From Fonticula alba ATCC 38817 (Eukaryota > Protista > Nucleariida), in NCBI GenBank assembly GCA_000388065.2, contig KB932204.1: a stretch of 50,598 nucleotides of DNA, one strand, 5' to 3'. Under the pieces are notes generated by a model. That model had not been told where the DNA came from, ran no database searches, and saw only the letters and a list, made by a program, of their open reading frames with translations. The position numbers and the translations under genes are program-made. The number at the start of each line of letters is the position of its first letter. Within the stretch, counting starts at the first letter, position 1. Below are positions 3,469 to 48,551 of this stretch, piece after piece.

Positions 3469-6400
3469 ATGCAGGCCCCCGTTCTTGTTCTGCGTACGCC
3501 ACTGCCCTGCCTCCTTGCGCCTGCGCCCCTGTGAGTGTCCTCCTCCCAGAGGTGCCCACGGGCACTTTGCTGACCCTCTTCGCTGCCTTCCTCCTTCCTC
3601 CTTTCCCACCCACAGAGCAGAACACCAAGCGCCAGCACGGCCGCAAGACCCAGATTGAGAACATCAATGCTGCCAAGGTATGGCTGTGCTTGTCCCCCTC
3701 GCCGTTGGCCCGGTCTGGCCTGGCTCCGGCCCCTCGCTTGCCATCTGGCCCCTTTGGCCCCCCACCGCGCCCTGACCCCCTGCCCGCCGCGACTCGCTCC
3801 CTCTTTCGTTCCCGGGGCCTGCCCACTCGGCATTCAGACTGTCGCCGACATCATCCGCACCTGCCTGGGCCCGCGCGCCATGCTGAAGATGCTGCTTGAC
3901 CCGATGGGCGGCATTGTCCTGACCAATGATGGTAACGCCATCCTGCGCGAGTGCGACATCGCCCATCCGGCCGCCAAGTCCATGATTGAGCTGTCCCACA
4001 CTCAGGATGAGGAGGTCGGCGATGGCACCACCTCGGTCATTGTCCTGGGTGCGTTGTGCTGACTCTGCGTCCGGCCGCCGTGGGCGGATACCTCCCTCCC
4101 CGCTCTTACTCCCCCTGGGGACAGGCGGGGGGCGGACACACCACACCGCAGCCACAGAGACTCTGACATGCCTTCCGCCTCTTTTGTTTCTTTCCTTTTT
4201 TTTTTCTCGCACCCATCTCCGCAGCCGGCGAGGTCCTCAATGTGGCCCTGCCCTTCGTCGAGGGCGACATGCACCCGACCGTTATCATTCGCGCCTTCAG
4301 CCAGGCGCTCGAGGAGGGTCTGGCCTTCTACAAGACCATCGTCAAGCCCATTGACATCCACAACCGCGAGGAGATGATCTCCACCATCCGCAGCTCTCTC
4401 GGCACCAAATACGTCAGGTTCGTCGCCGAGCCAGGGCCGGCCACGTGTCGCCCTTGCATTTGCTCCCCTCCTGCTTGTGGCAGCTCACATGGGACTAACC
4501 ATCACCTTCTCCCTCTCTTCCTCTCGTCGATGCGGTGCCGCACAGCCGCTGGAGCGACCTCATGTGCGACCTGGCCTACCGGGCGGTCTTCACCGTGGCC
4601 GTGCACGGCGACGGGTCCGAGAACTCCCGCAACGAGGTGGACATCAAGCGCTTCGCCAAGGTGGAGAAGGTTCCCGGCGGTGAGATCGAGGAGTCTCGCG
4701 TGCTATTACAAGGNNNNNNNNNNNNNNNNNNNNNNNNNNNNNNNNNGCACAGCCGCTGGAGCGACCTCATGTGCGACCTGGCCTACCGGGCGGTCTTCAC
4801 CGTGGCCGTGCACGGCGACGGGTCCGAGAACTCCCGCAACGAGGTGGACATCAAGCGCTTCGCCAAGGTGGAGAAGGTTCCCGGCGGTGAGATCGAGGAG
4901 TCTCGCGTGCTGGACGGTGTGATGCTCAACAAGGACGTCACCCATGCCCAGATGCGCCGGCGCATTGAGAACCCCCGCATTCTGCTGCTCGATTGCCCGC
5001 TCGAGTACAAGAAGGGCGAGTCCCAGATTTCCGTCGAGGTGCGCTCCTTCTCCCCCTCCCTCCTCCTCTCTTTCCCTGTGCATCGCTTGTGTGATCATCT
5101 GCCACGATGGGCATTCCTCCTTCCCCCCCCCTCCCTTTTTTGCCTCCTTCTCACCATGCCGCGCGCCTGGGCCTGCACACGCACACACGACTGTACACAG
5201 ATCACCAAGGAGAATGACTGGAACCGCGTCCTCCAGATCGAGGAGGAGTTCATCAAGAAGATGTGCGACGACATCATCGCCCTCAAGCCGGATCTGGTGA
5301 TCACTGAGAAGGGTCTTTCCGGTACGTGTTTTGGCATGGATGCATGGTGTTGCTGCTGTCCTCTGGGCCTCCTGTCTGACCGCCGGTGTCCGCTGCTCTC
5401 CCCTGGCGCCGGCAGACCTTGCCCAGCACCACCTCCTGAAGGCCGGTATCAGCGCCCTCCGTCGTGTCCGCAAGTCCGACAACCTGCGCATTGCCCGGTA
5501 CGAGCATCTCACGATGTGTCCCCCTTCTCGCATCGGCATCTCCCCTGCTCGCCGACTCCGCGGGCTTTGCCCCCCCCCCCCCCCCCGCGCGCGCCTGCAT
5601 GCGCGTCCCGGCCGCTGACACAGTCACCATCCTCCGCCCCCTCGCACCCACGCACCATGAACAGCGCCTGCGGTGCCACCATCGTCGACCGCACTGAGGA
5701 CATCAAGGAGAGCGACATCGGCACCAAGTGCGGCCTCTTCTACGTCGACAAGATTGGCGATGAGTACTTCTCCTTCATCGTCGACTGCAAGGAGCCCAAG
5801 GCGTGCACCCTGCTCCTGCGCGGTGCCTCGAAGGATGTCCTGAGCGAGGTCGAGCGCAACCTGCAGGATGCCATGAACGTGGCCCGGAATGTCATCTTCG
5901 AGCCGGCTCTCCTGCCCGGTGGTGGTGCCGCCGAGATGGCCCTTGCCACTCACCTCAACGAGTATGCCAAGTCCATTGAGGGCATCCACCGTGGCCCGTT
6001 CGCCGCCATTGCCAAGGCTCTGGAGGTCATCCCCCGCACTCTGATCCAGAACTGCGGTGGCAATGTCAACCATATCATCACCCAGCTGAAGGTGCGTACA
6101 CCGAGCCCCCTCTCTGCCCGAGGAACGGGGCAGGCACATGACTCCTCCGTGTGGTCTCTCCCTTCCCCCTGGCCTCCTTCGTCCTCTTGTGTCGGAGCAG
6201 CGACGGGGGGAGGGGGGCGGCCAGTGTATATATGCGTGTGTGTGCGTGTGTGCTGACCCCTTTGTGTGCTGTGTCATTTCGGGCCGGCGTGTGCCTGTCC
6301 TCTGCTCGCGCCTCCTCCCCTCCTCCCATGCGCAGGCCAAGCACGTCGCTGGCCAGCACACCTTCGGCATCGACGGCGACCTGGGCACCCTGAACGACAT

Positions 6401-7492: not shown

Positions 7493-9676
7493 CTACTCCT
7501 GGGAGACATGATACTTACGGCAGAAGTCGGCCATACGAGCGAAGGCCTCGGCCAGCTTCTCCTTGGGCGAGGTGAAGACAATGCGGAAGTAGCCCGGAAC
7601 ACCGAAGCACTGGGTGTATACGGGTCGGATTGTGTTTGCAGTGGCCAAATGGTCAAGATGGGAGTGGGGGAGGGGGGAGAGAGAGAGAGGGGGGGGGCGG
7701 AGAGCAATGCACCGGGCCCGGGGGAGGGGGGAGGGGAAGCGCTCAAAGACAACTCCGAGGAACGTACAGCACCAGGCAGGCAGTGGACCGACTGCTCGGC
7801 GATGAGGCGCTCACAGAAGCGGCTGTCATTGCCGGCAAACTCGGGCAGGGCCACCGGGTCGATCTTGACCATGACATACATGGCGCCCTGCGGGGCGATC
7901 GGCTGCAGGCCGGGGATCTTGCGGATGGCCTCGACAGTGGTGTTGGCGAGCTCCTGTCGGCATGGGGCGTGGCAGTGTAGGAGCGGAGGCTTAGCAACAG
8001 AGGGTCGTCGGCAGCTAAAGGGCATTTTCCGGACAAGAAGGCTTCAATGCCAGGGCCAGGCGCACCTCGAGCATGCGGTTGTTGTTGTCGAAGTAGGACT
8101 GCTCGGTCTCGAGGAGGATCGTCGGCAGGACGCCCTGGAGGAGGGAGTTGGCACCGAGAACCAACTGGGAGAGGCGGTTCAGACCATCGCGGATCTGCCG
8201 GGCGCCGGTGGGCGGGTCAGCAATGGCGTGTCAATGAACCCGCGGCAGGAGAGGGAGGGCAAAGAAATGGGTGGACACAATATGACAGGAGGGCCGGGAG
8301 GTGGCAGGGAGCCGCAGCGCACCTGGGCAAGCTGGCCATGACGATCGTGGATGGTCAGCCAGCCAAGGCGCCAGCCGGGGACCATGAAACGCTTGGCCAG
8401 GCCACCGGCCGAGATGACAGGCACGTCGGTGCTCAGCTACCCGGACAGCGGGGGAACAGCGAGGGAGGGGGAAAGACAACATGTGTCAGTGGGTGATGCA
8501 AGGCCGAGAGGGGGAAGACGGGGGCGAGAAGGCCGGCATGGGCCCGGCTGGGAGCGCGCGACAACAGCGAGACAGCCACATACACGAGCAATGTGGGTGA
8601 AGGTCTGGCCGGAGAAGACCATGTCGGCGTAAATCTCATCGGCAAAGATGGGCAGCCGGTGCTTTTGGGCCACTGACAGCGCGCGAGGGGAGGGCGTGAG
8701 CGAGGGCAAGGAGGGAAAAAAAAGGAGGACGAGGTGGGCGAGTGTCAGAGGAAGTGGGGGTGCGGGGGGGGGCAAGGAAAAAAGCCCACAGGGAGGAGAC
8801 GGCAAACGGCGATCCAGAGACGGCCAGTGGGGGGGGGGGGGGATACCGTACCGGCGAGAAGCTCGAGGAGGTGAGCCTCGGAGTAGTTCGAGCCGCAGGG
8901 GTTCGAGGGGTTGGTGATCAGGATGAAGGCGGTCTTCGCGTCGATCAGGGCCTCGATCGACTCGATGCTAGCCTCCCAGTTCTTCTCGGCCTGCGGTGCG
9001 TCGGAGTGGCCAGGCACCACAAGGGGGAACACACGGAAGGGCAGGGGTGGTGAGGGGGGCGTCAAGCGAAGGGGGGCACTGGCGAGGGAAGGCAGCTTGA
9101 GGCGACGGAGCCGCGCTCTGCCCCGCCGGGCACGTACCACCAGATCGTAGTGGCGGACCTCGACGCCACGAGCCTCGGCGATGGTCTGGTACAGGGAGAA
9201 GCCCGGCCGGGGGAGGAGGATGTTCTGGCCCTCGTCGGCCATGGCGCTGATGGCCAGCTCAATGGCACCGGAGCAGCCCGAGGCAATGATCACATCGGCC
9301 GGGGTGAGGGGCGCGCGCGGGTCCGAGCCGTAGGCCTTGGCGATGGCCGCACGGGCGGACTCATACCCGGTGGACGGGGGGTACCCGTTGAACTTCTTGC
9401 TGTTGATGGCCTCGACGAGGGCGGCATTGACCGAGTCGGGGACGGAGAAGTTCCCGAAAATGGTCGGGTCACCTGGAGCGATGGTGTCAGTGGCAAGGGG
9501 CAGGCACTGGGGCATGAGGCGAGCGGCGAGCGAGTGGACAAACCGATGGACAGGCGGATGTCCGCCAGGTCGGGGTTCGGGACGGTCTTCATGCCATCAA
9601 CGATCTGACGGATGGGGTTGGTGGTGCGCAGGGAGGAGGCGGAGGCCTTGAGAACCGGGAAGTCGGACATGGTCAT
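7493..9676 (-). CDS. TAT: Tyrosine aminotransferase (PLP-dependent class I), multi-exon
   Basis: [10 protein letters not shown] / [11 protein letters not shown] / [19 protein letters not shown] / [16 protein letters not shown] / [10 protein letters not shown] / IFADEIY / [16 protein letters not shown] (PLP Lys) / PQGAMYVMV / [17 protein letters not shown] at 7495-7493; ATG at 9676 or 9670. Confidence 0.93.
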
Positions 9677-9895: not shown

Positions 9896-11600
9896 CCGGG
9901 GGGGGGGGGGGGGGGCCTGGGCCGAGGGGAGGCGGGCCGGGAGAGAGACACACCTACACACTGGGTAAAATTCACCTGCCCGCCGCGGCCCTCCTTGCAC
10001 CACTCTACCGGCACACTGCCACCGCCATCGGCCCAGGATACGCACGGAAGATCTCCCGCGGGCGCTCCCGGCCGGCCGCCCGGCCGCAGGCATCCCCTTT
10101 CCCAGTGCATGCCCCGAGGGGCGGGGGGGGGGGGCGGAGAAGGCCCGGACACGCTCTCTCGTGTGGGGACATGTGTAGAGGGTGTCCTGGCGGCCCGGCC
10201 ACCAAGCCGGGGGTGGCGGAGGGGGGGGGGGGTTGGCCTGCGATCGTGCATGTGCACACCACCCCCAGCCACTCCGGCCCGGAGGGGCGGGGTGCCGCCG
10301 CCCAGCACATGACAGACCGTCCTGCGCCTTGCGCCGAGCCCTCCTGGGGGGGGGGGCCCCCCGTCCCCCCCCCCCCCCCGAGAGTGTGAGTTTGGAGGAC
10401 GGGAACATGCTTCCTCCCTTGGTGTGCTTGTCGCCATAAAAATGCATCCTTTTCAAGGCCGTCTACGGGACCTGCGCAAGGGCTGACGCTAGGTCGTGTT
10501 TTTTTTTTCCGCCAAAGTTAGCGACCCTGCCTGCCCCCCTTCCTCTCGCCGTCCGCCNNNNNNNNNNNNNNNNNNNNNNNNNNNNNNNNNNNNNNNNNNN
10601 NNNNNNNNNNNNNNNNNNNNNNNNNNNNNNNNNNNNNNNNNNNNNNNNNNNNNNNNNNNNNNNNNNNNNNNNNNNNNNNNNNNNNNNNNNNNNNNNNNNN
10701 NNNNNNNNNNNNNNNNNNNNNNNNNNNNNNNNNNNNNNNNNNNNNNNNNNNNNNNNNNNNNNNNNNNNNNNNNNNNNNNNNNNNNNNNNNNNNNNNNNNN
10801 NNNNNNNNNNNNNNNNNNNNNNNNNNNNNNNNNNNNNNNNNNNNNNNNNNNNNNNNNNNNNNNNNNNNNNNNNNNNNNNNNNNNNNNNNNNNNNNNNNNN
10901 NNNNNNNNNNNNNNNNNNNNNNNNNNNNNNNNNNNNNNNNNNNNNNNNNNNNNNNNNNNNNNNNNNNNNNNNNNNNNNNNNNNNNNNNNNNNNNNNNNNN
11001 NNNNNNNNNNNNNNNNNNNNNNNNNNNNNNNNNNNNNNNNNNNNNNNNNNNNNNNNNNNNNNNNNNNNNNNNNNNNNNNNNNNNNNNNNNNNNNNNNNNN
11101 NNNNNNNNNNNNNNNNNNNNNNNNNNNNNNNNNNNNNNNNNNNNNNNNNNNNNNNNNNNNNNNNNNNNNNNNNNNNNNNNNNNNNNNNNNNNNNNNNNNN
11201 NNNNNNNNNNNNNNNNNNNNNNNNNNNNNNNNNNNNNNNNNNNNNNNNNNNNNNNNNNNNNNNNNNNNNNNNNNNNNNNNNNNNNNNNNNNNNNNNNNNN
11301 NNNNNNNNNNNNNNNNNNNNNNNNNNNNNNNNNNNNNNNNNNNNNNNNNNNNNNNNNNNNNNNNNNNNNNNNNNNNNNNNNNNNNNNCCCCCTCCACTCA
11401 TTTAAATCCTTCTCTCCTCCAGCCTCCACCCCACTTCCCGGGCCCCCAGGGAAGCAGTCGCCGTCGTCGCCGTCGGTACCACTGCCTGGGTCTCCCCTCT
11501 CCCTTGCCAACACGCTCACGCACACACGCACACAGGCACACGCACACACGCACACACGCACACACGCACACACGCACACGCGCGTCCCCCACCACCAGCC

Positions 11601-14190
11601 ATGGCCATCCTGGCGTTTCTTTTTGGACTGCTGATCGGCCTCGCTGCCTTGCCGGCCGGCCTGGCCTTGCTGGTGCAGCGGTCCTACTCGGAGAAGGAGA
11701 ACCGACGCCATCTGCGTGCGGAGCGCCGGCGCCGGCGGGCGGTGGTTGAGTCACGTCGAGCACGGCTCCTGGCCCGTGCGGCAACTTCGCCCGAGGCGTT
11801 GGCCGCCGCGGCCGACGGCAGCCCTTACTTGCTGGATCTGGCACTGGACCCGGAGGCCGACCAGGCGGCCGGGGCCCAGGCGGACCTGGGCAACCTGGAC
11901 GTCGACTCGGACATCGAGGATGGACCGGGTCCCGGTGCACGGAGCCTGCTTGGCCGGCCGGCCGGCGGCCCGGCCGAAGCACTTGACGACATGTTCGCCG
12001 ACTATGTGGATCTCGATGAGATCGCCCCGCTGGGCGACCCGCGGGAGCTCATGCGCCGACAGGTTCGCTCGCAGCGCCTGACCGAATGGCCAACCGGGGC
12101 CCGGGAGTCCATCATCGCCATGCTCCCGGCCCCCGGCGGGTACGATTACACGGAGGCCGACTTTGCCCTGCACCCGGGCGCCCCGCTGCCGAAGGGGGCC
12201 GAGCCATGCCGCTGGCTGAATGTGGCCCTGGCGCGGTTGTTCTTCTCCATGCGCACGTCGCCGCTGCTGAAGAACAAGATTCGCCGCAAGTTCGAGGAGA
12301 AGGTCCTGCCGAAGCTGGTGAACCAGTCGATCATTGTACGTCCGCCCCTTGCCGTGGATCGCGCCGGCTTGCTTTTGCCCCCCCCCCTTTGCCTCCCTCC
12401 GCCGGGCCCCATGGCCGCGGATGGCTCCCTTCTTCTTTTTTCTTTTTTCCTCGGCCCCCTCCCGCCGGCCACTCACATCTCGGTCCCCGCCCCGGCGGGG
12501 CATGTGCCCTGGGCCAGAAATCGGTCGAACTGTCACACCTCTTCCTCGGTGACACACCGCCGACGGTCCTCTGGGCGCGCATCCTTCCGTACAGCCCCTC
12601 GGCCAAGCACAACCACCAGGTTGTCCCGGTGGAGGTGGACCTGGCTCTGTGCTATGCCGGCGGGCCCGTTGGCGGCCAGGCGTCCAGCATCGGCGGGACC
12701 CTGGTGGTCGAGGCGTCGGTCGGCGGGGTGAGTCTCACGGCCCCGGTGTCGGTGTCCCTGCGCCGGCTGGAGGGCATCCTCCGGCTGCGCCTGCCGCACC
12801 CGGAGAACCTGTCCGAAATGGACATTGCCTTTGTCCGGCCGCCGGTTCTCGATTTGCAAGTGTCCTCGAATTTGATCCTCTTCCGGTCGCAGGTGGACCG
12901 CTTCCTGGCCAAGAAACTGGCATCCATCCTGCGCGAGCTGCTGGCCCTGCCCCAGCGCCGGCCGGTGGACCTTCCCCTGGTATCCTTCCCCTCGAAGCAT
13001 CCCCTGTGCGAGTGCGACCTGCCGGCTTTGGTGGCCGAGGCCCTGCTCAATCCCCTGTCCGGGTACCTGCTGGGACAGGGCAGTGCCGGTGGCAGTGCCG
13101 GGCATGGCGGCCTGTCCGGGGGCCTTTCGGGGGCGGCCGGCGCCGGGGGCCGGGCCGACGCGCGCATGCACCATCCGCTTCCGGGCCGGCGGTTCCGCTC
13201 GGACCCGCATGCGCGTGAAACCCAGCTCCGCATTCGCTTCCCCCTGGGCTTCCAACTGGCTGCCATGCCGGCCGCGCCGGCTCCCCTGACCGGGGCCGAC
13301 TTTTCGGTGTTGGCGGATTTGGTTTCCTCCCTGGCTTATGCCACCCTGGAGGTGCTTCACTCGCCCTCGAGCTCCACCAGCCTGGGATCTCTGCGGCTTC
13401 GGGCCCTGGCCGGTGATGATGGCGAGGCGACGCCCCTCGGGGCCGGGACCATGGCCGGTGGCGGCCCCTCTGCCGGGGGTCCGGCCACTGCTGGCATGCC
13501 GAGCCCCGGAGGGTCGTCTCATCCCGCCGACACCGGGTCATCCAGTGCGGCCTCCTCGACCACCGGATCGCCCTCCATCCATGGGGGGACCGGTGTCAGC
13601 GGCTCGACAGGGCCCGGGCCCGTGGCGGCCGGGTCCGGCGCCGCGGCCACCCTCGGCCAGGGCCCCGCACCGTCGGCGGCCGCCCGCACAGCTGCCATTG
13701 CCTGGACCAGCATCAGCGAGAAGCATGGCGCGGCGGTCTTCGAGAAGCGCAAGCCCCAGAAACCCGGCGAGCCCAGTCTCTATCGGATTCGGGCGCGAGT
13801 GGCCTGCTCTCCGGCGGCCATGGAGCGTGTTCTCCGGCAGAATGACTCCATGCACATCGCCAGCCTGGAGGCCTCCTTCCGCCAGGCGCCGGTCTTGCGC
13901 ACGGTCCTCCCCGGGGCCGGGCTTTCGGACGCCGCGGCCGGCTTCCTCCGGCGCGTGGAAGACCTGGGCGTGGAGCGGGTGAGCCTGCGGGAGTTGCACT
14001 TTGGGTCCATTCGCCGGCGCACGGCCGGCGGGGCTGGCAACTCGTCTTCCGGCTCGTCCGGCTCCGAGGCCAAGTCCGAGTCCAAGTCCCATTCGGCCGG
14101 GGCCATGCTCTCGCCCCTGACACCGGCCACCGGGACACTGGGCTCGAGCGCCGGGACCGGTGCCGGGACCGGCACAGACACCCCGCCGTC

Positions 14191-14222
<32 letters not shown>

Positions 14223-14803
14223 ACCAAGAGCAGCCGCTGAATGTCTGGCAGGTGCTCGAGGTCCATGGCACGGACCCGGCCAGTGGGTCCTTCTTCTCTA
14301 CCATGCGCTCGGTCACCTTTGCCCCGAGCCAGGGGACCGCGGCCGAGGCCCCTTCCGGTGGCTTGGCCGGCGGCATGGCCGAGGATGGCGAACCCGGGCC
14401 CGGTGGCTTCATCACCGGTGACTCGGGTGCCAGCCTCACGCGCGATTCGTCCAGCCTGGCGTCGGCGGCCACGCACTTTGCCGAAGACATCGCCTCGTCG
14501 GCATCCTCGGTGGTGGCTTCGGTCATGGGCCAGGCGGGATCCACCTCCGGGGGGTTGCTCTCCTCGTCGGCCTCGTCAGTCACCCAGGCCCTGAAGCACG
14601 CCCAGACCACTCGCCGGCCACTGGTGTACCTGTGCTCCTTCTTCATCAGCCCGGTTCCTGGTCACCCAGACGTGGCCGAGTTCACCTGGGTATCGCAACT
14701 CGGTTCGTGACAGGGGGGCAATCTGGGCTCGCCCTCCAGGCATCTACTTTGCCCTTTCCCTTTTGCCCTCCTGGCTGACATGCGTCCCTCTCCCTTTCTC
14801 CCT

Positions 14804-14834
<31 letters not shown>

Positions 14835-17057
14835 CACCTGCACCGCACACAGAGGGTGAGACGCGCGCGCTGCTTCACCCGAATCTCGCGCGCGTGGAGC
14901 GCCTGAAAACCCTCTTCGAGCGGCTTGGTTCCCCCCTGTGCGTGCTTCCTTGCTCCCATCCCCCCTTTCGGCCTATTCCCAGGTGCTTGGTCTAACCCCA
15001 TCCTCCACCGGCCCCCTTTTGGTTTCCTTCCCTTTCTCCTGCCGGCGCATAGGGTCCTTTATCCCTCGCCCTCCATCCAGAGCGGGCCCCTGCTGCTGCC
15101 GATCGAGGAGGTGTCCGTTTTGCTTCCGACACTCTCGCACTCGGGCACCGGCCTGCCGGTCCTGTCGCGGTCGGCGGCCGCCACGCCGGCCGGCCTTCGT
15201 GAAGACGGCGACACACAGGGCGATGGGGATGGACGTGGGCGTTCCCGGTCGCCGGCCGATGTCGGGCTCCTGCGGTCTGGCCGGCCGATCTCCGCGTCCA
15301 TCAGCAGCTCCATTTCTCTGGACCACCTGGCCGACCTGAGTGGGCCTCCCTCGCCCTTGGAAGCGCCGGGCTCGGCGCCGGCCGCCACTCATAGCCGGCT
15401 TTCCTCCCCGGCGGCGCCCTTCGGCGGGCATGGGGAATTCCTGACGGTGCCCGGTGCTGGGCCCCCCTCTGCCGGGACCGGGACCATGTCCACCAGCCAG
15501 TCGTATGACGATTTCCGCCAATTGCATCAGCAGCTGACCGGGTCCTCGGTCGGGGGCGATGCCACCGCCAGCGGCGCTGCGACAGGCAGCCCCGCCCGTT
15601 CGGCGGACACCGAGGCCGCCTCTGCTCGGTCGCTGGTCATGACCCCGGCAGCGCACGCGGCCCTGGTACGGCGGGCCCTCATGTCGCCATATATCCTCCG
15701 GCGGCCGTGGCGCATTGTCGACAAGACCACCATTCGCCAGCTGTCGGACACGCTGCTGCGCACGGCCCTGGCCTGCGAGGCGGCCTTTTCCCTGCCGCTG
15801 GTGAGCGATCCCTTTGACTCGGGGCTGCTGCCAACGTCCGGCTCTTCCGGCGAGGGCGCCGCCTCCGGCAAGGTCCGAAAGCTGCTCTTCCATCCACCGC
15901 TCATGGTGGCCTATGTGGATGTGGCCGAGCCGCCGGATGTGGTGTTCCGCACCTTGACCATGCCCTCGGCCCGGCGGGTGGTCCAGCCCGGCCTGCAGTC
16001 CATCAACACGCTGGCTCTGCTCAGTTTGAAGGGCACGTCGCCCTCGGGAGCCGGGTCTCCGCCGGGGGGGTCGTCGCCCGGGCCGCTGTCCCCGCGCGAG
16101 GGGCCGGCTGACGGATCGGCCGATGCCATGGACCATCTGTCGGTTTTCAGCTCCCACCGGACCATGGCCGTGCGGAGCTACAGCTACAAAGGCGAATGGC
16201 GCCTGCCCAAACGCGAGGCCTTCCTGCTGGATGTGTGCCAGCCGATTGCCGGGGTCCGGCCGGGGGCGACGGTCGCCACCACCGCGGCCGCCACCGCCGC
16301 GGCCCCGGCTGCTGGGGGTGGCGGCGGTGTGGCCGCCGCCCCGGCGGCCGGCTCCGCGCATGCCACCTCGGCAGCCGGGCCGGCGGCCACCCCCGGGAGT
16401 TACATCGCCGCGCAAATGTCCATCCTGCCGGATGGGTTCTCGGCCGGGGCCTACTTCGGCAAGGACAGCCAAATGCTGCTGAATGTGCCCCTTTCGGCGT
16501 TCATTGCGCGGTCTCCCTCGCCGGCCACCCTGGCGGCGGTGTCCCTGCCAGCGGATGACCATGCATCGGAGGCAGGCTCGGCCGCCGGGGCAGCCGGCTC
16601 GGCATCCTCGTCTGCCGGTGGGGGTGGCACCTCGGCCGGCGCGGCTGGCGCCACGTCAAGCTCGGCCACGCCGGCCGTCGGGTCGACCGGGGCTGCCACC
16701 CCCTCGCCGGCTCTGGGCGGCGCGAGCCCGGCCGTCTTGGGCCAGGCATCGCCCTCGGTGGGGTCGGTGGCCATTGGCTCCGGCTCCGCCGGCATGCCGT
16801 CCAACTCGAGTGGCGGATCTATGCAGGCCGGATCCACCGTTCAGGGGTCCGGCGTGGCGGGACCCGACGTGTCGGACGGCCAGGCATGCGACGCAAGCCG
16901 GCGCCACGCCCTGGCGGCCCAAGTGACACGTCTCTTCTTTGTGGCCATCGTCAACCCGGTGCAGGACCCGGCCCAATTGTCGCTCTTGTCGTTGCATGCG
17001 TCCGACCTGCCGAAGCATGTGGGCGAGCTGGTGGCATCCTCCTCCACCGCTACCACC

Positions 17058-17089
<32 letters not shown>

Positions 17090-19453
17090 GGCCGGGGGGC
17101 TCTCCAGTTCGAGCCCCATCTCGGTGCCGGGCTCCGGAGTCACGGCCAGCGGGACCATCACGCCGTCGGCCGGGGTGTCGGCCGCGTCGCCGTCCGGGTC
17201 CTTGAGCACGGGCGCCGGTGGGTCTGGCGCTGGCGCCGGCACCAGCACGGCGCCCGTGGCCCCGGCCGTCGGCCGCGTGGACTCGTCACTGGTGGCCCGG
17301 GTGTCCAACTCCTGGATCCGACAGTTGGAGATGACGGCCTTGCAGGCGCGCCGGCTGCGGCCGATGACCTCGCGCTTGGCCGGGCAGCTGGACCAGCTGG
17401 CCGTGGCCGAGAGCTCCCGCGCGCATGATGGTTCGGTCATCAAGTCGCCGAAGCCGATCGAGGTGTCGAAGTTTTCGTCGGACATGTCGGCCGAGCCGAC
17501 ACGCCGATTGCTGGGCATGGCCCCGGGCGGTGGGCCCGGTGTCCCGGGGCTCGGGGGCGATGCGCTGCTTTCCGGCGGCGATCGTCCGGCCGGGGGGCTG
17601 CTGCGTGCTCCGGAAGACCGGACCCGTGGGCGATCCCCTTCGCGAGGCCGGTCCCCGGGTCCATCCGGGGTGGCGGTGAGCTCGCCGCCGGCCCCGGCCC
17701 TCGGGTCCGGCATGGAGGCATGTAGCTCCATCGACTTTTCCGAGGCCCTCAGCTCGGATGACATTTCCAAGGTGACCATTCGCAATGGGTCGGCTTTCCA
17801 GGCGGTTCTGCCGGTGACGCTGGACCTCCCGGCCCCTGGCGGCTGTGCCTCGGCGGCGCAGCTTCCCCTGGACCATGCGTCCAGTGTGCAGCTCCTGCTG
17901 GACTGGACCCCGGCACGCGATGGCACCCCCCCGGCCGACCTGCCACCCGGGTCAGGGGATGTCCTGCTGGCCGCACGACCGGCCCTCGAGGCGGCCCGGT
18001 GCCTGATGACCAGCGAGGCAGGCGCCGGTACTGGGGCCGGCGCCGGTGCCGGCGGCGAGGCCGCCCGGCCGACCACCATGACCACCCCCCCGGCGACCAG
18101 CCCCTATCCCGAGTCGAATCCGCGCTTCCAGCTGCGCTTCAACTTCACCCAGGGCTCGGCGTCGAGTCATGAAATCCAATTCGCCGTGTACTTCGTGCCG
18201 GCTTCCACCACCAGCAGCATCTTCGATCGGGGGGTCTTGCCGGTCCAGTGTGATAGCTGCTTGGAATTCTCGCCCCCCCTGTCGAGCTTGCCGCTGGCCC
18301 CGGGGGTCGGGTCCATGGCCACGACCCCGGCCCAGGACCGGGCACATTGCCGGACGTGTGCCCACCTGTCGGAGTTGATTGCCGCCCGCTCGCGCTTGGC
18401 CACGGCCGAATCCACCTTCCTGACAACCGGGCCCTTTGACTGGTCATCACGCTGCCCGCCCTTGCATGCGGCCTTCTTGAATTTGCAGCGCATCGAGCAG
18501 CTCCTGCCGGCGGCCCTGTGGCCCACGTTGCCGGCGGCCCTCCGGCCGACCACTCCTTCGTACTTGTCGCCGGCCACGGCCGGAGCCGAGCCGGGGCTCC
18601 TGGCAGACTTGTCGGCCGGGCCCCCGACGACCCTCAGCACGAGCGGCGGCACCATTTCCAAGTCTCGATCGCTGACCCGGCGCCTGTTGCAATCGTCCCA
18701 CCACCGGTCCAGCTCGGCTAGCACATCGGCCTCTTCCTCTTCTTCCAGCCTGGCCAGCAGCTCCAGCAGCCTGGCCTCGAGCTTGCGCCTGGGCCGGCGG
18801 TCTCGGCGTAATGGGGCCGATGCGGATTCGCAGCAATCGTCCCTTTCGGCGGCCACCACCCCGGCCGAGGAAGATGGCTCCGGGTCGGAAACGCCGGCCA
18901 GTGGTGATGAGTGTCCCGGGGTTCTCCCTCCGCCGGGGCATTCGTCCTCCTCCTCGCTGCGCCTGGTGTCGGATCTGTCCATGCCGCTGGCCTCCGACCT
19001 GTCAGAGGTGTCCTCGCCGGATGGCGCGGCGGCCACCATAGCCGGGGGGTGGCATTCCGGCGACCCGGGAACCTGGCTGGCTGGGTCAGTTCTCCGACAA
19101 TCCGGCGACTTGCAGCGCCTCCGGGCGCCTGGGGCCTTGGCGGCGGATGCCATTCCGTCGGCCATGTCCGGCACCACGGTTCCCATGGTCCCGGGGCACT
19201 GGCAATTGGTGGTCCCCTGGCAGACATGCCCCTCGGTTGGTGTGCCGATCTCCGGGCAGGTGGATTTGCCGATCGATCTGCACAATGCCAGCTCCCCGGC
19301 CTCGGGGACCATGCTCGGGCAGGTGGTCCTTGTGTGGGACAATTCGCATGCGCGGCTGACGGAAAAGAGCGTCAGCTTCTCGGCCAGCGTGGTGCGGTTC
19401 TTCGGCGAGCGGCCATGCATGGGCCCGGGCTCGGCCGAGCCTCCGGCCGTGCC

Positions 19454-19487
<34 letters not shown>

Positions 19488-20807
19488 GCCTCGGCAGCAG
19501 TGGCCTATCGAACGGTGCCACGCTCGGTGCTGGCTCGTACCCGGCCAGGGCCTTTGTCCCTCCCCCCGCGGCAGTACTTCTCCGGCGCCCTGGTCATCGG
19601 CCGGCGAGACCAATGCTCCGTGTCTCTGCCGGTGGTTCTCAGCTTGCCGGGGCTCCTCGGGCCGGAGGGCTTCGGCAGCCGGTGGCACCTGCGCCGGCAC
19701 CGAGTGGCCTGGGAATTCCGCTCCGATGGGGACATCGCCTTTTCGGTGGACTTCCTGCCGCGGGCGTGCGTGTCCGGTCGGGCGACCATCGCCGGGTCGG
19801 ATGGCCGTGCCTCGGGACCCCCTTCGCCAGATGCTTCGGGGGTCGGGGACATGGCGGATGCCTCGGCCACCGTGACCCAGTCGGTGCACTTGCCCCTGGG
19901 CCTAACTCGAACCGGGCTACATATGGCCGGTGTGCCGGTGTCGCTGCCCGATGCCGGGATCGAAGGCGCCCATCGGGGCGATGTGGCCACGGCCGCTGCT
20001 GCAGCCGGCACAATGGCCGCCGGGCCGCCGAGTGCCGCGGGCACTGGCGCCACCACCACCACCACCACCGGTCCGGCCACGAGCCCGGTCTCGGGCGGGG
20101 CATCCTCTCCGGCCAGTGTGTTTGAGGTTCCTGCTGGTGTCCCGGTCCCGGAGGCGCTCCTGCGCCATGCCTCGGAGCTGGTGGCCCACGGACGCCAGGG
20201 ATTCTTCACGGCCGGGGACCTGGCCCGGCCGGTGGCCACCGCCAACATGACCACCACTGCGCCCACCATGCCCAGCACCGGGGGTGTATATCATGCAGGC
20301 GATCTGCCGCCGCACTCCACCTCCGAGGGGGGCAGTGGCTCGGGCTCGAGCTCGGGCTCGGGTCCCGGCGCCACGGCGGCCACTACCACCACCACCACCA
20401 CCACCACCACCCCTGTCCCTGGCACCACGCCCAGCTGCCCGGTTGGACCGCACCCGTTGGCCCCCTGCCCGTTGACACTGCCGGTGGCTTTGACCCGGCA
20501 ATCCCTGCCGCCGATGAGTCTCAGCCGGGAAAGCCGCATCGCCACCTCGGATGGGACAATCTCCGGCAGCTACGACCTAGATCTGTCGCAATTGCTGCTG
20601 GTTGGCCCGCCGGCGGCGCTGGTTACCTCGGCGTCGCGCGGTGCCGGCATCCCGGCCCCGGTGTCGCCGGTGTGGTTTGCCGATCAGGACGTCTTCCTCG
20701 GGCGGGTGGTGCTCACTTGGAACAACCAGAGTGGGCGCGTGTTCTCGCGGAAGATCACGTACCACGTCTCGTGCCAGACATTGATCGACTCGTCGCGTGA
20801 TGTGTGA
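11601..20807 (+). CDS. Giant lipid-transfer / membrane-contact protein: N-terminal TM, SMP, START, START, GOLD, GOLD (~2,919 aa)
   Basis: Exons 11601-12335, 12518-14702, 14853-14937 and 15053-20807 join in frame (8,760 nt) with GT-AG sites. Hydrophobic N-terminus MAILAFLFGLLIGLAALPAGLALLV. SMP hallmark AEPCRWLNVALARLF...KSVELSHLFLGDTPPTV...LRRLEGILRLRL...MDIAFVRPPVLDLQV. Two START-like and two GOLD-like motif sets (see findings). Confidence 0.85.
14195..14221 (+). repeat. (CAG)8CAA poly-Gln tract in the lipid-transfer protein
   Basis: Encodes Q9. Confidence 0.9.
19455..19484 (+). repeat. (CAG)10 poly-Gln tract between the two GOLD domains
   Basis: Encodes Q10. Confidence 0.9.
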
Positions 20808-21519
20808 TTGATGGACCGCGCGATCCGTTGGCTGCTCCGTCATCTCGCTCGCCCTCTCCGGTGGGGGGCAGGCCGCGGCGGCGGGAGGCGGGCGGGGGGG
20901 GGGGGGGGGGAGAGAAGCGGCTGGGACCCGGGCGCGGGCCCCTCGGCGTGCGGGCGGCCGAGGTCGCCACGGCGGAGGGGCCGCGGAGAGGGTGACCGGA
21001 ATGGGCCAAGTGCAGCAGTCCGATGGCTGGCGGCGAGGGACCGCAGCGCACCCGCTGCACCCGGGGGGGGCGAGGGCGGCGGGGCGCGGTGAGCCACACC
21101 CCCCGAAGGGCTGCAGAGCGCTCGGAATGAAGCCGGAGAAAAAAGGGCCCCTCCCGCAGGCTGCCATCCGGCCGCAGGGGGACCCGCCCGAGGCGCCTCG
21201 GAGGGTGCCGGCCGCCACCCTCTGGCGTGCCGGTGAACGGGCCGGGGAGGGGCNNNNNNNNNNGGGGGGGGGTGTCCAGACGCGGGTGCGACCCGAGCGC
21301 GGGCCCCTCCCCGTGCGAGTATGTGCCATCATGGCGGCTGGGCATCCTCCGCGACTTGGTATGCCCGGGCGGGCCCGTGTGTTTGGCCAACCGGGAATCA
21401 TCCGCACACAATGGCCCCGTATCACTTTGGGTGCCCTGTCTCCTTGGCTGCTTTGGCACCTACTTTTTGCTCCCCCTGCGCCTGCGCGTACTGCCCCCCC
21501 CCCCCCCCCTTGTAGGCCC

Positions 21520-21551
<32 letters not shown>

Positions 21552-22104
21552 GTACTGTGCATTCACCCTGCACACAGACATCTCTAATACACACATGCAT
21601 ACATTTTTCCCACTCAACACACTGTCCTGTCCTCCACCATCACGAGCACCCCGGCAAACGCACGCCCGAGGCCGTCCTGCGGCCCGAAGGAGCCAGGCAG
21701 TTGCCGTCTGGTGTCTAGGCCTGAGCGGCGTTTAGGGAGAAGATGGCGCCGGGCAACCTCACACCCGGGGGACGGGGTCGGAACCGCCGGGCGGAGGCCA
21801 AGCTGATCGGGCATTACGGCTACTTTCCGGACCAGCGCACACCGCCAAGACTTGGCCAGGGCCGGCCCGACCGAGGGGGCTTTTTTCTGAGGCCCATGCC
21901 GCTGGGGGAGGGCGTTCGGCCGCCCGAGCGCAAACACCTCCCCTCCCCCCCCCCCTCCCACTGCCTCTGCTAGAGTTCCTTTTGCTCGGGGTCCCGCTCT
22001 CTCCCGCGTCCTGCTCGGGTGTCATTCCTCTGGTCTTTTTCTTCACCCCCCCCCCCTCACACACACACACACACACACACACACCCCTTCTCTCTGGTCC
22101 CGGC

Positions 22105-25100
22105 ATGCCCGCCCCTACCCCTCGGGCGGTCAGCGCCCTGCAGATCCCTCAGCCGCAAGACGGGGCAAACAGCGCGCCAGATCGGTCGCCCATCCGGTCG
22201 CGGCCGTCGCTGGCCCCAGATGCGCATGTGGTGTCGCCCTTCCTCGGTCGTGCGGACGCCCAGTCCCGGCGGTCGAGCATCGCCTCGGCCACTTCCTTCT
22301 ATGAAGTCGGGCTCAACCATGCGGCCATGCTCTGGGGCGGGCAGACGCCGCATCTGAATGATTTGCGCTTCGACTCGGCCAGCCAGCTGGATAGCCTGCA
22401 CTATTTGAACATCGCGGTGGTGCCCTTCTCGGCCTCACCGCCGGGGCATACCGCGCCGGACTTCCTGGCCGCCCCTTCCTCCTCGAGCTGGGTGTCATTC
22501 TCGGATTTCGCCGAGATCCTCACCGAACATTGGTCCATGGATCCGAGCCATGCACGGGATGACATCAACCACCCGAGCAATGGCTTCCTCTATCGGGACT
22601 TCCTGCCGACCCCGCGCGCGGACGACGCGTCGGATCTGCTGGCCAGCGCCTTTGCCGGCCGCGGACCGACGACCGGCGGCTCGGAGGCCTCGTCCTCCGG
22701 GGCCGCGGCCACTACCGGGTCCCAGCGCCGGGCGGTACAGCCGCCGTCCAGTGGGGCGCGCCGTCGGGCGGGCGGCGCCCCGGCCGGCCCGGGCCCCCAG
22801 CCCCCGCCGGCCCTCGGTACCCAATTGCATCCGGGCAATCCGCATGCCATGGGCAATGTCAAGCTGCGCTTTTGGATTGGGCCAGGCTTCGTGGACAGCG
22901 TCAACTCCGGGAACTCCTACGTCGGGGGTGCTCGCATTAATGAGGGGGTCTGGCAGCAGGTGTTTGCCCACCGGCGCTTTGTGGCTGTACGTGTGGCCCA
23001 GGCTGCGCGGCATCCCGTCTGGTTGAGCGGGCTTGCCCCTTCCCTTCTCCTAGATGCTGGCACTGCTGCCGTTGATGTCGGGGGACTACCAGGGGCTTTT
23101 TTTTTGGGGGGGGGGGGGAGCGAGGGGAAAGAATGCTGCCTGTCTCGGAGTACTGACACTGCTCCGGTCTCTGCTGGGTGCTCTGCTGGGTGTTCTGCCG
23201 GGCATCCGCCAAATCAGGCAATTGGTGTGTTGGATTTGGCACACACCGAGGACGTTCCCTCGGCCCTGGACAAGATGAATGCCTTCTTCAATGACAATGT
23301 ACGCTCGTGAGAGGGGGCCCGGCGCATTGTTGGCTGCCCTCTCTTCTTTTTTCTTTCCTTTTTTCCCGAGCCCCCTTCTCTTCCCTTCGCCTGTCGCCTG
23401 TCGCCTGTCGCCCCTTTTCCTCTGCCGCTATTTGGGTCTTTCTTGGCCGTTCGGTGCATCCTGACCTGCTGCCTTGGCCGCCGGACCACAGTTCCCGTAC
23501 CTCACGACGGCCAAGATCATCGGCATCAATGCCCCGGTGGGGTTCCGGTCGACCGGGCAGCACAATGTCATCTTCCTGGACCAGGCCCTGAATGTCGGGA
23601 GCGGGGCCCTAGACGAGCAGTACTCGGAGGAGGACCGGCCGGACAATCATGCCAAGGCGGCGGCCCGATTCCCGCTGCTATTCAGCCACCTGGCCCCGAT
23701 TGTGGAGGACCTGGCCGGGATGCTGTACAGCAACCTGGCCGGCCAGGCGTACGCCGCCTTCCACCGGATCCACGACCTGGCCACCTGCCAGGAGCAGGGT
23801 CAGGTCCCCGGGGCGGGGCTCCTGGACCCGCCCTTCATTGTGCCGGTGGATGCGGACTTCCTCGCGCCGACCGGGGCGCCCGTTCGCCCGGGGATGCCGG
23901 TCTTCAAGAAGATGACCTACGAGGACCGGGTGCGGCTGCGAGCCTGCCGCGTGTATGCCGACCTGCTGGCCAGCTGTGGGCATATCCTGCCGGCTTTCGA
24001 GGTGTATACGCATCTGATCGAGGAGACGCGCGGCCTGCCGGATCCGATCACCATTGCCGGCGCCCTGGAGGGCTGGCTCTATTGCATTATTCAGGCATTT
24101 GTGGTATGTCCAAAGAAAAGGCAGCCCCTTGGCAAGGGTTCGGCGACGTGTGGACACCCCCATCCCGCTGTTCCCCTCCCCCCTGCTACGCGCGCACACA
24201 CACACACACATACATACATACATGCATATGTGTCCACACGCGCGCATGCTAACTACAGCCGATGCTTGCCCTGGCACAGGAGATTCGCGAGGACTATACC
24301 CCGGCTGCGCGGCAGAAGCATGGTGACATGGCCACCCTGCGGAAGCGCATCGCCAAAGCCATTCAGGACACATGCCGCCTGGTTTTCATCACCCTGCAGG
24401 GCCTTCTGCCCCCGGCCCCGGGATCCAGCGGCGGTGGCATGTTCAGCTCGGATCTCCTGCAGCCGGCCATCTTTTCGCCGGTCATGCAGCCACGCGGGGG
24501 CGCGGGCCGATTTGATGCGCCCCGACCGCGTGCCGCATCGTCCAGCAGCTCGGCCCTGTCAACCAGCAGCATGGGCATGACGAATGCAAGCGGGCCACAC
24601 TCCACGTCGGCCTGGTCTTCGGTCCTGTCCCTGACGTCCGGCTCGGGCGGAGTCCTGCCTGGCTCCTCCGCATCTTCGGTCTCGGGCAACCCCTGGTTCG
24701 GGGAAGACGACTTCCTCTCGGGCCCGACACAGCGGACCCGGTCCAGCCAGCGGGCCGCGCTGCACCCCCTGCGTACATCCACCCCGGTGCCCTTCCCCTC
24801 CGGGGTGACTGCTTGCCCAGACAAGAGCGAGCCCTTCTCCATCCTGCTGGCCGAGTCGATGCTGCGCTTTGCCCGGGCGGCTGGTCGTTTTGGTGGGCTG
24901 GACTTCGCCCGGGCCCTGGTCCGAGAGCTTGGTGATCAGGTGTGGCAACTCCGGCCACTGGATTATGTGCGTTGTGCTTTTCCCTGCGGGGAGCCTCTGA
25001 AAGTGGGGGCGGGGGGGGGACAAGAAGAGATGGTGCTGTGGTATCGGTGCTGACACTTCCCGTCCATGCTCTGTTTCTTTTTTTCGTCGCTGCCACACGG

Positions 25101-28100
25101 GGTGGGGGCCATTGTCTTCCTCTTCTTTTCTTTACAGGCCACCCTGCACTTGCAAATCTCCGAGCTCTATCGGAGCCCCCTTCGTGCCACCAAGCGCCAA
25201 TTCCTGCACTGCTACTTTTCGGCCTCAGTCTTGAAGAACAGTGCCACGACGGTGGGCCAATTTTGCGCGGCATACGACTGCCTGGCTTCACTGGGGACCT
25301 TCTTCCGCCTGAGGTGTCCCTCGCTGTCGGATGTGCCAGCCGATCAGCAGAGCACCCCCGCGCCATCCGAGAGTATGTTGTCCCTTTTGTGACCCTGGTG
25401 GCCTTCTGAGACCGGTGCCCTAACACGCCTGCTCTTCGACTCAGATGCCGGGCACTTGACGACCGGCTTCGAGCCTGAGGATGGCACGGATGGCCAGCCA
25501 TCGCTCATTGAGCAGATGCTGTCTGCGCAGCAGGAGGGCATGGGCCTGGCGGCCGGCTTCTTTCATCTGCGAATGCTGCTGCTTTTCGACCTGGCCGAGA
25601 TGTGTGCCACTCTCAGACGTACGTGACCGCGGGGGGAGGGGGAGGGGGNNNNNNNNNNNNNNNNNNNNNNNNNNNGGGGGGGGGGGGGGATCATCCCAGG
25701 AGCTTCGGGATTGGCTGATCGTACTCGGAAGGCATGCCACTGACCTGCTTTCCGTTCTTTCTTTCTTTCTTTCTTCTTTTCCCCCGCACACCACCCAGAT
25801 TCCACCCTGGCCGTGTATTACATTGGCCTGTTGCTGAAGCTTCATCATGATCACATTGACCTGGTGGAGCAGCATGAACTGCAGAAGAACCTCCTCCGGC
25901 TCATCAGCACGGCAACCCCCCCTCAGGCGGGCCCGGCGCTCGCGGTCACCTTCAACTCACTGCCGGAGCTGGTGTCCGCTGGTTTCCTTCCCTCGCCGGA
26001 ATCCTTTGCTCTGGTCTCGACACGCAGTTCGCCGGGCTCCTCTCTTTCTCGAAGCCCGGAGCTTGGGGAGCCTTTCTTCTTCAACCCCTTCGCCAAGAAG
26101 GGCCAGTCTGAGGCGACCCCGGCGGTGCCGCAAGTACGTAGATGGCGGAACACGCGCGTGCATGCACACACGTCCTTCCCTTTCTTCTGCCACTCTCCTT
26201 CGTGCCATAATCCATGCATGCCATGGTGACCTGGGCCCATGGCGATGCTGATGGTGATACTCACACGCACTTGGACCCGGCTCTCGGCGCAGTTCGGTGC
26301 TGATGAGACCATTCGCGTGCATGTGGTCCTGTCGAATCCCTTGCTCGTGCCGATTGAGATCCAAAGCCTGCGCCTTGAGTACGTTCCTGGGCATTTCAAA
26401 TCCCTGCGTCTGTCAGGCTGTTGACCTCGCCCATGTTGCAGAACCTCGGGGCTGCCATTCGACGCGCATGTGTCCGTCAATGACGTGCTCTATCCCCAAA
26501 CCACCTCGAAGGGGATTGTCCTCACGGGCCGCGTTGCCCACTTCCCGGACTCGGTTGGCCCGGAGAAGTTGCACATCCTTGGCGTCGTGATCCGAGCCTT
26601 CGGCGTTGAGCGCCTGCATGCTCTCCCCGGAGCGACGTATGTTCCCTCCAGCTCGGGCACCTTCCCGTCGCCTTCGATCTTCCAAGCCTCCCGTGCCCAT
26701 GGCGCGCCGTGTGTATTGACATGTGCTCCCGCTACTTTGCCTCGCTCCCGGCCGCATGTCGGTGCCCGCCCCGCGCCCTCCATAGGCCCATCACGGCGAA
26801 TGTCGTTCCCCCGCTGCCATACCTGCGCGTGACCTCCGTCTCGGACTTGTGCTCGGGGCAGCGGCACTTTTATGGGGCGCCTTCGCCACTGGCCGATGTC
26901 GATCCCAAGGCGGTCACCGGCCCGAAGGATGACATCCAGCTTCCGGCCTTCCTGTCATCGATCGAGCTTTTCGAGGGACAACTGTGCGTATGGCCTCCTC
27001 TAAGTGCCCGGGCCCCATGTGCCGGCGGGGTCGGCGAGGGAGCCCTCATGTGTCTCTTTTGCCCCCTCCTCTGGCTGTGGGGGGCTTTCTCCGACCGCCT
27101 GGGGTTTGTTTGTTGGTGATGGTGCTTTTCCCTGTCACTTACCTGTCCCTTTGATATGCACAGCTTTGGCGCGGTTTTCGAGTTGGAAAATCAGAGCACC
27201 CTGCCACTGAAGGCCAGCTGTGTGACCGCCACCTTCGAAGCCGACACCCTGGACCAGGCGGAGTCAGCGACGGACTTCTTTTTCAACCGGGCATATGAGC
27301 CCCTGGCTGGGGTGTCTCTCCTGGACCGGGCCCCGAGCCCGGGGGGCCTGGAGCGGCATGCCCAGGCGACGGGCTCTTGGGCTTCGGAGGCACGCACGTC
27401 CATTCCCTTCCGTGGGCGGTCCTTCCTGGTGGTCCTTCTTCGCGGTCGGCCGGGACTCACAGGCGGCCGGGTGATCGTGCGGTACACCACCGGGCCCGAG
27501 GAGGCGCCAGACGTCGGCAGCGGGACCCCAGGCGGCGGGGATCGCCCCCAGCGTCAGATCACCCTCCGCATGAATGTCACCGTCAGGCCGCTGGTCCGGT
27601 ATCGACTGCGTAGCTGCCTGCCTGCGGCGCTCTATCTGCACGAGGCACCGGAGACGCAGGCCTCCGCTGCGGCTCCGGTCCACTGGCCGGATGTCGGGGC
27701 GGAAGTGGTGTCCAATCCGGCAGCCGCGCTGACGGCCATGGCCGCGCACCACCAACAAGTGGTGGCGCCCCTGGCTGGAGCCGGGGGGGACATCAGAAAC
27801 GACATCAGCCTCCTGGAGTTGGATTTGTCGGCCTCAGCGCGCCCGGAGCCCGGGCCGCCGGTGATGGCCTGCCTGCAGTTGCTTCCCTTTGGGCCGCCGC
27901 CGGAAGGGGCTTGCTCGCACGGGTGCCTCGCCAGCGGCGGTGACCGCAGCAACACCAATGACAATCTTGGCTCGGGGCGGGCCGGCCTCTTTGAGAGCAG
28001 GCAATGCCTGGGTTTGGAAGGGATCCCGACGCTCGGCCGGGCGCACGGCTGGTCGGACGCGTGCGACGTGTGTGCGCGCTTCCTGTGGCGCATCCGTCTT

Positions 28101-46266: not shown

Positions 46267-48551
<2,285 letters not shown>

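Follow-up and report, generated by a model that had tools for sequence, protein, structure and literature searches.

Known contact-site lipid transporters carry one lipid-transfer module together with targeting modules. Could a single gene of the nucleariid Fonticula alba combine two kinds of lipid-transfer module on one membrane-anchored chain? The question was raised by a stretch of 50,598 nt from contig KB932204.1 (strain ATCC 38817, assembly GCA_000388065.2), here called the window. A preliminary description, made from the letters alone, had read positions 11601–20807 as one gene for a protein of about 2,900 residues with an N-terminal transmembrane (TM) helix, an SMP domain, two START domains (START1 and START2) and two GOLD domains (GOLD1 and GOLD2), and had proposed it as an undescribed membrane-contact machine. 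We found that the gene is single and that its SMP domain has significant homologues, and we put the probability of a TM-SMP-2x START-like-2x GOLD-like architecture, with minor relabelling allowed, at roughly 0.6. For the START and GOLD parts the claim is one of likeness and not of membership.

The locus is a single four-exon gene

Three long plus-strand open reading frames (ORFs) in two frames (11601–12731, 12086–14710 and 14925–20807) are joined into one coding sequence by three GT..AG introns (12336–12517, 14703–14852 and 14938–15052). The joined ORFs make 11601–20807 on the plus strand one four-exon gene, whose spliced coding sequence of 8,760 nt encodes 2,919 residues, without an internal stop and with a single terminal stop. 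Four small transcriptome runs from the source organism, dated 2012 (X1–X4), supplied the RNA evidence, and their contigs begin at 11588–11589. The joint of intron 1 (12335->12518) was listed among the contigs of run X1, and introns 2 and 3 were both read from one 348-nt contig of X3 (record 20). This contig matches 14456–14702 and then matches again from 14871; the 18 letters that separate the two stretches are those of 14853–14870, inside a masked CT repeat. The match of the contig ends at 14938 and is followed by GTCCTTTATCCCTCG, a word that is unique in the window and lies at 15054–15068.

Because the X1 joint and the X3 contig confirm the introns, the exons could be set at 11601–12335, 12518–14702, 14853–14937 and 15053–20807. 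Exon 1 carries the start codon, the TM helix, an acidic, low-complexity linker, an 'EWP' motif and the first half of SMP, while exon 2 starts with the C-terminal half of SMP and ends with the main part of START1. Exon 3 is 85 nt long and encodes the C-terminal helix of START1 (…ARVERLKTLFERL…), and exon 4 (5,755 nt) stays open up to the stop codon at 20805–20807. The introns measure 182 nt (intron 1, 70% pyrimidine), 150 nt (intron 2, with a (CT)n run) and 115 nt (intron 3). The expected single gene of about 2,900 residues was thus borne out, with correct frame joins. The motifs that the preliminary description had quoted were all present where it had placed them, and its 'FTWVSQLEG' and helix 'RVERLKTLFERL' proved to be correct splice products. 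We hold this model of one gene, four exons and 2,919 residues with high confidence.

An artefact of the gene model was considered, in which two genes (TM-SMP-START1 and START2-GOLD-GOLD) had been read as one or in-frame introns had inflated the protein. The contigs are short and of low depth, no single record spans the gene, and an assembly gap (Ns, 10558–11386) ends 215 nt upstream of the ATG, all of which would leave room for such an error. The X3 contig, however, joins exons 2, 3 and 4 in frame and so places START1 and the long exon 4 on one transcript. Exon 4 is one 5.7-kb ORF in which the G+C content at third codon positions (GC3) was 0.73–0.92 in each 300-nt window, and a composition scan of it found no window resembling the pyrimidine-rich introns (70–74% C+T). 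Furthermore, RNA contigs were collinear with the genome across 15567–17247, and a compact relative, P0012, holds SMP, START-like and two GOLD-like domains in one ORF (see below). An artefact of either kind is, in our judgement, very unlikely.

Downstream of the collinear region, at 17300–20900, 0.58–0.73 of the sampled words were present in X1–X4. An X4 contig suggested a further joint, 16304->17259 (954 nt), which we rejected: the CC..TG ends are non-canonical, four extra letters are present and one side is only 21 nt long, pointing to an assembly chimera in low-complexity sequence. Less probably, it represents an alternative isoform lacking part of START2. The 5' untranslated region is made up of a (CA)n-like repeat (11507–11587), and the low-GC windows of the composition profile are assembly gaps and not AT-rich DNA.

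By a simple entropy measure about one-third of the residues are of low complexity, and low-complexity inserts, which add up to about 1,000 residues, split every domain of the protein. These inserts are rich in homopolymers (poly-Q, poly-T and A/S/G runs) and sequence models miss the domains that contain them, as would be expected of a decaying gene, that is, one that once served lipid transfer, was overrun by expanding repeats and is still transcribed but yields no working product. Set against this are an 8.7-kb frame free of stops in coding DNA of about 70% GC, three precisely spliced introns, a strong GC3 signal and conserved islands that still match the relatives, and we regard decay as extremely improbable.

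Membrane helix and SMP domain

Kyte-Doolittle analysis revealed one hydrophobic segment only, residues 1–26 (11601–11678; windows above 1.8 only at residues 1–8(+19)), in agreement with the single N-terminal TM helix that had been predicted. With this anchor placed just ahead of SMP, the protein follows the layout of Mmm1, PDZD8 and TEX2, and the relatives are built likewise. On the plus strand, exon 1 holds a conserved 'EWP' motif ahead of SMP (from ~12084) and, at its end, the N-terminal SMP half (~12198–12335), and the C-terminal half, which was recognized by phmmer, blastp and a family profile, occupies the start of exon 2 (12518–13051).

When exon 2 was compared by phmmer with 1.84 billion representative sequences, three matches were obtained (P0001, 7e-10; P0002, 1.1e-5; P0003, 1.7e-5), all of them falling on exon 2 residues 2–165, the SMP part; this search returned no copy of the window protein and no relative outside that part. 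Pairwise blastp of the window SMP with P0003 gave 5e-17. The spliced protein matched P0009, from Amoeboaphelidium, over residues 162–423 (E 3.4e-14), an alignment that spans the exon 1/2 junction and includes 'EWP'. A profile built from the C-terminal SMP half of the relatives matched residues 315–402 with an E of 6.8e-13, the best of 52 controls (reversed or block-shuffled sequences) reaching 0.048.

The names of the domain came through the relatives. Residues 1–270 of P0003 scored 25.2 bits with Pfam MMM1 (PF10296; cut-off 21.9) and also matched SMP_MUG190-like (PF25669), P0009 scored 21.8 bits against the same 21.9 MMM1 cut-off, and precomputed matches to PDZD8_N (PF26547) exist for P0003, P0009 and P0010 as well as for exon 1 of L005, the locus of P0012. 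For the window's own SMP piece the best Pfam result was SMP_MUG190-like at E 0.24. It is therefore the match of the window to P0003, together with the score of P0003 above the MMM1 cut-off, that assigns the piece to SMP. In Atlas, which works with protein-language-model features, the named look-alikes of 12518–13069 were all SMP families (MMM1, Mdm12, Mdm34, SMP_LBD and MUG190-like), with a best score of 0.89. An AlphaFold model of P0012 that includes the SMP C-terminal half had strands followed by a long helix, at a predicted local distance difference test score (pLDDT) of 33. Collectively, the significant homology found by phmmer, blastp, the family profile and the relatives' MMM1 matches upholds the SMP domain of the preliminary description, and we treat this homology-based assignment as practically settled.

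An unnamed family and its compact member P0012

A search with P0003 yielded four relatives. Two are hypothetical proteins of Amoeboaphelidium protococcarum (Aphelidiomycota; Fungi incertae sedis), P0009 (1,060 residues) and P0010 (1,051 residues); the others are P0011 (701 residues), which like P0003 is from an uncultured organism, and P0012 (818 residues), from an uncultured eukaryote metagenome (ENA ERZ28654292, locus L005) with an unrelated and compact genome of 40% GC. Besides SMP, all five relatives have in common a conserved second domain, about 280 residues long, which ends in '…FG[YF]x[VI]xP…C…S…KLKSFIEEL' and has 25 invariant columns across the five. A membrane helix at the N-terminus was seen in P0009 and P0010 and is also encoded by L005 exon 1 and by a small exon lying upstream in L001. 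In P0003 and P0011 the protein stops right behind the second domain and a convergently oriented neighbour follows at once; P0001, P0002 and P0004 are short contigs ending at the SMP domain.

On the strength of its SMP domain and the C-terminal part of its post-SMP domain, the window protein belongs to this TM-SMP-START-like family (P0003, P0009, P0010, P0011 and P0012). As judged from the sequences, the aphelid-near relatives are without a GOLD tail and the family core consists of TM, SMP and one START-like domain. The window protein adds a second START-like module to this core.

Beyond its second domain, P0012 has a tail of two copies in tandem, each about 120 residues long, all-beta in appearance and ending in 'G-x-h-x-h-x-W-E-N…'. 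In the L005 gene a 39-nt intron separates a TM/SMP exon from a single ORF of 820 residues (about 955 residues in total), and convergent ORFs lie close downstream. The gene thus encodes TM-SMP, START-like and two GOLD-like domains, which argues against a gene-fusion artefact in the window. The order TM, SMP, START-like and two GOLD-like is the same in both proteins, and at the level of sequence this domain order is conserved between them. They differ in length (about 955 versus 2,919 residues), in the number of START-like modules (one versus two) and in the almost complete lack of low-complexity sequence in P0012, and outside SMP their sequence similarity is weak.

The intron of L005 (3382–3420) is 39 nt long and in-frame, runs GTAAGC…AATAG with stop codons inside, lies within the SMP domain and differs in position from intron 1 of the window. 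A gene order of HR1-domain gene, RICTOR and TM-SMP-START-like gene is kept in L001 (5416–12367) and L006 (375–8106), and L005 (3429–7141) has a RICTOR-type ORF on the other side. No HR1 or RICTOR neighbours occur in the window.

START-like modules

The main part of START1 (13697–14702, plus strand) forms the end of exon 2 and is split by two low-complexity inserts. Its C-terminal part, residues 937–998 encoded by exons 2 and 3, aligned with the post-SMP domain of the family. This alignment was obtained by blastp to P0011 (E 0.017), by hmmsearch (E 6.4e-4; best control 0.071) and by hhalign against the family domain (E 1.4e-4), and exon 3 lies in the segment aligned to the family's 'KLKSFIEEL' helix. 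The N-terminal part of START1 had no detectable alignment to the family domain. The low-confidence AlphaFold model of P0012 (pLDDT 33) has, by DSSP, the order helices, strands and a long helix at 474–501, which is compatible with a helix-grip fold.

START2 (15636–17450, plus strand) consists of five islands separated by low-complexity inserts and is START-like by its Atlas look-alikes. For its N-terminal part (15636–16289) the first match shared 176 features and reached a score of 0.95; of the 100 matches, 76 belonged to the START set. The model of that first match itself resembles the START domains of CERT, STARD13 and ACOT11, with TM-scores of 0.56–0.69 (normalised by hit). The Atlas recognition value was 2049, under the tool's reliability mark of 2300. 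We consider it likely that START2 is START-like; for START1 the same reading is favoured with somewhat less assurance.

GOLD-like modules

GOLD1 (17733–19436, plus strand) has its strands at ~17757–17870, 18120–18257 and 19230–19430 and contains a helical, low-complexity insert of more than 300 residues. GOLD2 (19563–20804, plus strand) has strands at ~19569–19781 and 20529–20804, an insert of about 240 residues, and forms the C-terminus of the protein; its motifs 'VAWEFRSDGDIAFSV' and 'GRVVLTWNNQSGRVFSRKITYHV' are present. When the two modules were compared, their last strands matched (blastp E 0.007) and two further short matches were collinear. The terminal strand pair, 'G-x-h-x-h-x-W-[DEN]-N…K-x-h-x-[YF]', is one that we take to resemble the GOLD signature.

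Similarity to the tail of P0012 was also found. 'FAVYFVPAST' of GOLD1 resembles 'FAIYFVPESS' of the first GOLD-like copy of P0012 (blastp E 1.4), and the end of GOLD2 resembles the end of copy 2 (blastp E 0.2). When the last 58 residues of P0012 (761–818) were used as a phmmer query, they matched both 2422–2448 in GOLD1 and 2883–2909 in GOLD2, with a sequence E of 1.2e-4 for the window protein and 0.0038 for the best control. In Atlas, the best named look-alikes of P0012 residues 575–818 were GOLD_PATL1_C (patellin-type), GOLD_2/FYCO1 and EMP24 (0.87–0.89, 170–171 shared features), and nine of the ten best named matches belonged to one clan; as the score stays below 0.9, these look-alikes are taken as a lead only. 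The predicted elements of P0012 residues 589–745 were all strands (AlphaFold, pLDDT 33). The balance of these results tilts towards a tandem GOLD-like tail.

The inserts of the two modules stand at a similar position (~18330–18530 and ~20150–20230) and share a word, HLSELIA in one and HASELVA in the other; that of GOLD1 is helical in the low-confidence AlphaFold model. If the insert is conserved between GOLD1 and GOLD2, the duplication would predate the insertion.

Weighing the START and GOLD assignments

Several results weigh against the START and GOLD assignments. START1, START2 and the relatives' domain matched no Pfam family at E <= 10, and neither did GOLD1, GOLD2 or P0012 575–818. Run over whole ORFs, ten domain islands and pieces of the relatives cut to domain size, Pfam gave matches of the SMP type alone. 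PDB sequence searches, both with single sequences and with alignment profiles, retrieved no START chain (family START-like profile, A5) and no GOLD chain (GOLD profile, A2), only chance matches. Thus neither Pfam START (PF01852) nor a solved START chain was recovered for the START-like modules, and the same was true of GOLD_2 (PF13897), GOLD_PATL1_C (PF25099), EMP24_GP25L (PF01105) and solved chains for the GOLD-like ones. START2 was similar neither to START1 nor to the family domain, also by hhalign. With hhalign, the GOLD pieces of the window, freed of their inserts, gave weak matches to P0012 (E 0.004–0.03), no better than some shuffles. AlphaFold reached a pLDDT of 32 for the GOLD1+GOLD2 region as a single sequence and of 33 for P0012 with a five-sequence alignment, and a Foldseek search of PDB with the P0012 model returned noise only. 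The language-model recognition lay under the reliability mark for the SMP and START2 pieces, and the P0012 GOLD score, below 0.9, covers part of a protein.

These results fit a protein that has TM and SMP only, belongs with the Mmm1/PDZD8-like group and ends in a very long, mostly disordered tail, in which the START and GOLD islands are other folds or lineage-specific segments with coincidental motifs. Each direct test for a START or GOLD family was negative or unusable, the GOLD link to P0012 is near noise by hhalign, and the low-complexity third of the residues would suit such a tail. A disordered tail does not account as readily for the START look-alikes of 15636–16289 or the GOLD look-alikes of the P0012 tail, nor for an island order shared with P0012, terminal strands that match between GOLD1 and GOLD2, and a post-SMP domain conserved across five relatives. 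We judge this alternative unlikely and prefer the START-like and GOLD-like reading.

The support for START and GOLD in the window protein (look-alikes, weak collinear homology and an internal repeat) is accordingly of lead level, and it is weakest for the GOLD pair. Of the two START domains put forward in the preliminary description, what stands is the set of START2 look-alikes and the C-terminal family alignment of START1, with a putative helix-grip fold; of the two GOLD domains, the weak collinear match to the P0012 tail and the internal repeat stand, again with a putative fold. The chance that the whole architecture holds strictly as named, with true SMP, START and GOLD domains, falls a little short of even.

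When the window pieces and the relatives were aligned globally with MAFFT, the regions outside SMP were misaligned, and this alignment was discarded. Word-indexed homologue searches with the whole of exon 4 and with residues 186–323 found nothing, the exon 4 query probably having been swamped by low-complexity words. Metagenome scans with the family alignment (A1) and with P0012 gave pattern matches and no confirmed relative. In this genome, low-complexity inserts within domains probably hide ordinary folds from Pfam and AlphaFold.

Relation to known lipid-transfer proteins

The closest known group is that of Mmm1 and PDZD8, in which an N-terminal membrane helix is directly followed by SMP, and the relatives match MMM1, SMP_MUG190-like and PDZD8_N. 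Mmm1 has no downstream modules and PDZD8 has PDZ, C1 and coiled-coil regions, whereas the tail of the window protein has START-like and GOLD-like modules. TEX2/Nvj2 and the extended synaptotagmins/tricalbins are contact-site proteins that also pair a membrane-anchored SMP with targeting modules, in their case PH or C2 domains; we know of none with a second type of lipid-transfer domain. The window SMP differs from theirs in that it scored best with clusters of the MMM1, Mdm12 and Mdm34 type and not with SMP_LBD.

Among START shuttles, the STARD proteins, CERT and ACOT11 resemble the window protein in that the best look-alike of the START2 N-terminal part was a START cluster. Known START proteins carry PH domains and FFAT motifs or are soluble, whereas the window modules have no Pfam START match, are split by inserts and are fused to SMP and a membrane anchor. 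SEC14L, the patellins, ACBD3 and FYCO1 share with it a C-terminal GOLD-like module after a lipid-binding module. The GOLD partners in SEC14L, patellins and ACBD3 are CRAL-TRIO or ACBP; the window protein differs in having two tandem copies with large inserts, no Pfam match and SMP/START as the partner, and the ends of its GOLD-like modules have a W where the usual F precedes DN.

No paper in which a single protein unites SMP, START and GOLD came to light in full-text literature searches, and the window protein fits best as a new variant, in domain architecture, among the SMP contact-site proteins anchored in the endoplasmic reticulum (ER). Wideman et al. (2018, PMC6069729) described two unnamed SMP paralogs of Mmm1/PDZD8; one of them belongs to flagellated fungi, and the other occurs in unicellular relatives of animals. 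The unnamed family may be one of these two, which is plausible because its nearest named homologues are from the aphelid Amoeboaphelidium. The term 'undescribed' therefore holds for the architecture, and the SMP lineage itself may already be among those paralogs.

A proposed mode of action

By analogy with Mmm1, PDZD8 and TEX2/Nvj2, the N-terminal helix would anchor the protein in the ER and leave most of it in the cytosol. Being of the TULIP type, the SMP domain would bind glycerolipids and pass them on, probably as a dimer, and each START-like module may shuttle a single lipid. The GOLD pair could bind a partner, either a protein or a phosphoinositide, on the facing organelle, which, if other GOLD proteins are a guide, might be the Golgi or an endosome, and the low-complexity linkers may act as flexible spacers reaching across the contact site.

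If the START-like and GOLD-like assignments hold, an SMP tube, START boxes and a GOLD adaptor pair would sit on one anchored chain. Such a chain would couple two transfer mechanisms in cis and offer a natural experiment on the handover of lipid from shuttle to bridge. It would also provide a function-suggesting architecture for an SMP lineage known so far as unnamed Mmm1/PDZD8 paralogs. We tentatively propose, with the odds slightly against us, a conserved class of contact-site machine that combines an ER-anchored SMP bridge, one or two START shuttles and tandem GOLD domains and occurs in at least two distant lineages, that of the window and that of L005. At about 955 residues, the L005 protein is far more tractable for expression and structure than the 2,919-residue form.

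Neighbouring genes and occurrence

Pfam matches were obtained for several neighbouring ORFs: a TCP-1/cpn60 chaperonin at 4535–6253 (plus strand, 9e-70), a class I/II aminotransferase at 8748–9515 (minus strand), a combination of MyTH4 and RhoGAP at 36969–40037 (plus strand) and a protein kinase at 46267–48000 (minus strand). Long ORFs including 21982–25053 and 27156–30272 had no Pfam match, and Rfam gave none over the window. Across runs X27–X37, words sampled from 17300–20900 were found at a fraction of 0.72 in a soil metagenome run and of 0.07–0.14 in sediment and sludge runs. Four 2025 DNA runs labelled with another organism contained 0.46–0.83 of these words, and four 2026 RNA runs bearing that same label contained none of the window DNA. 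RNA runs X6, X12, X13 and X17, labelled 'organism B', gave no match and are uninformative. The distribution points to a microbe that lives freely and is carried as a passenger into samples of other things.

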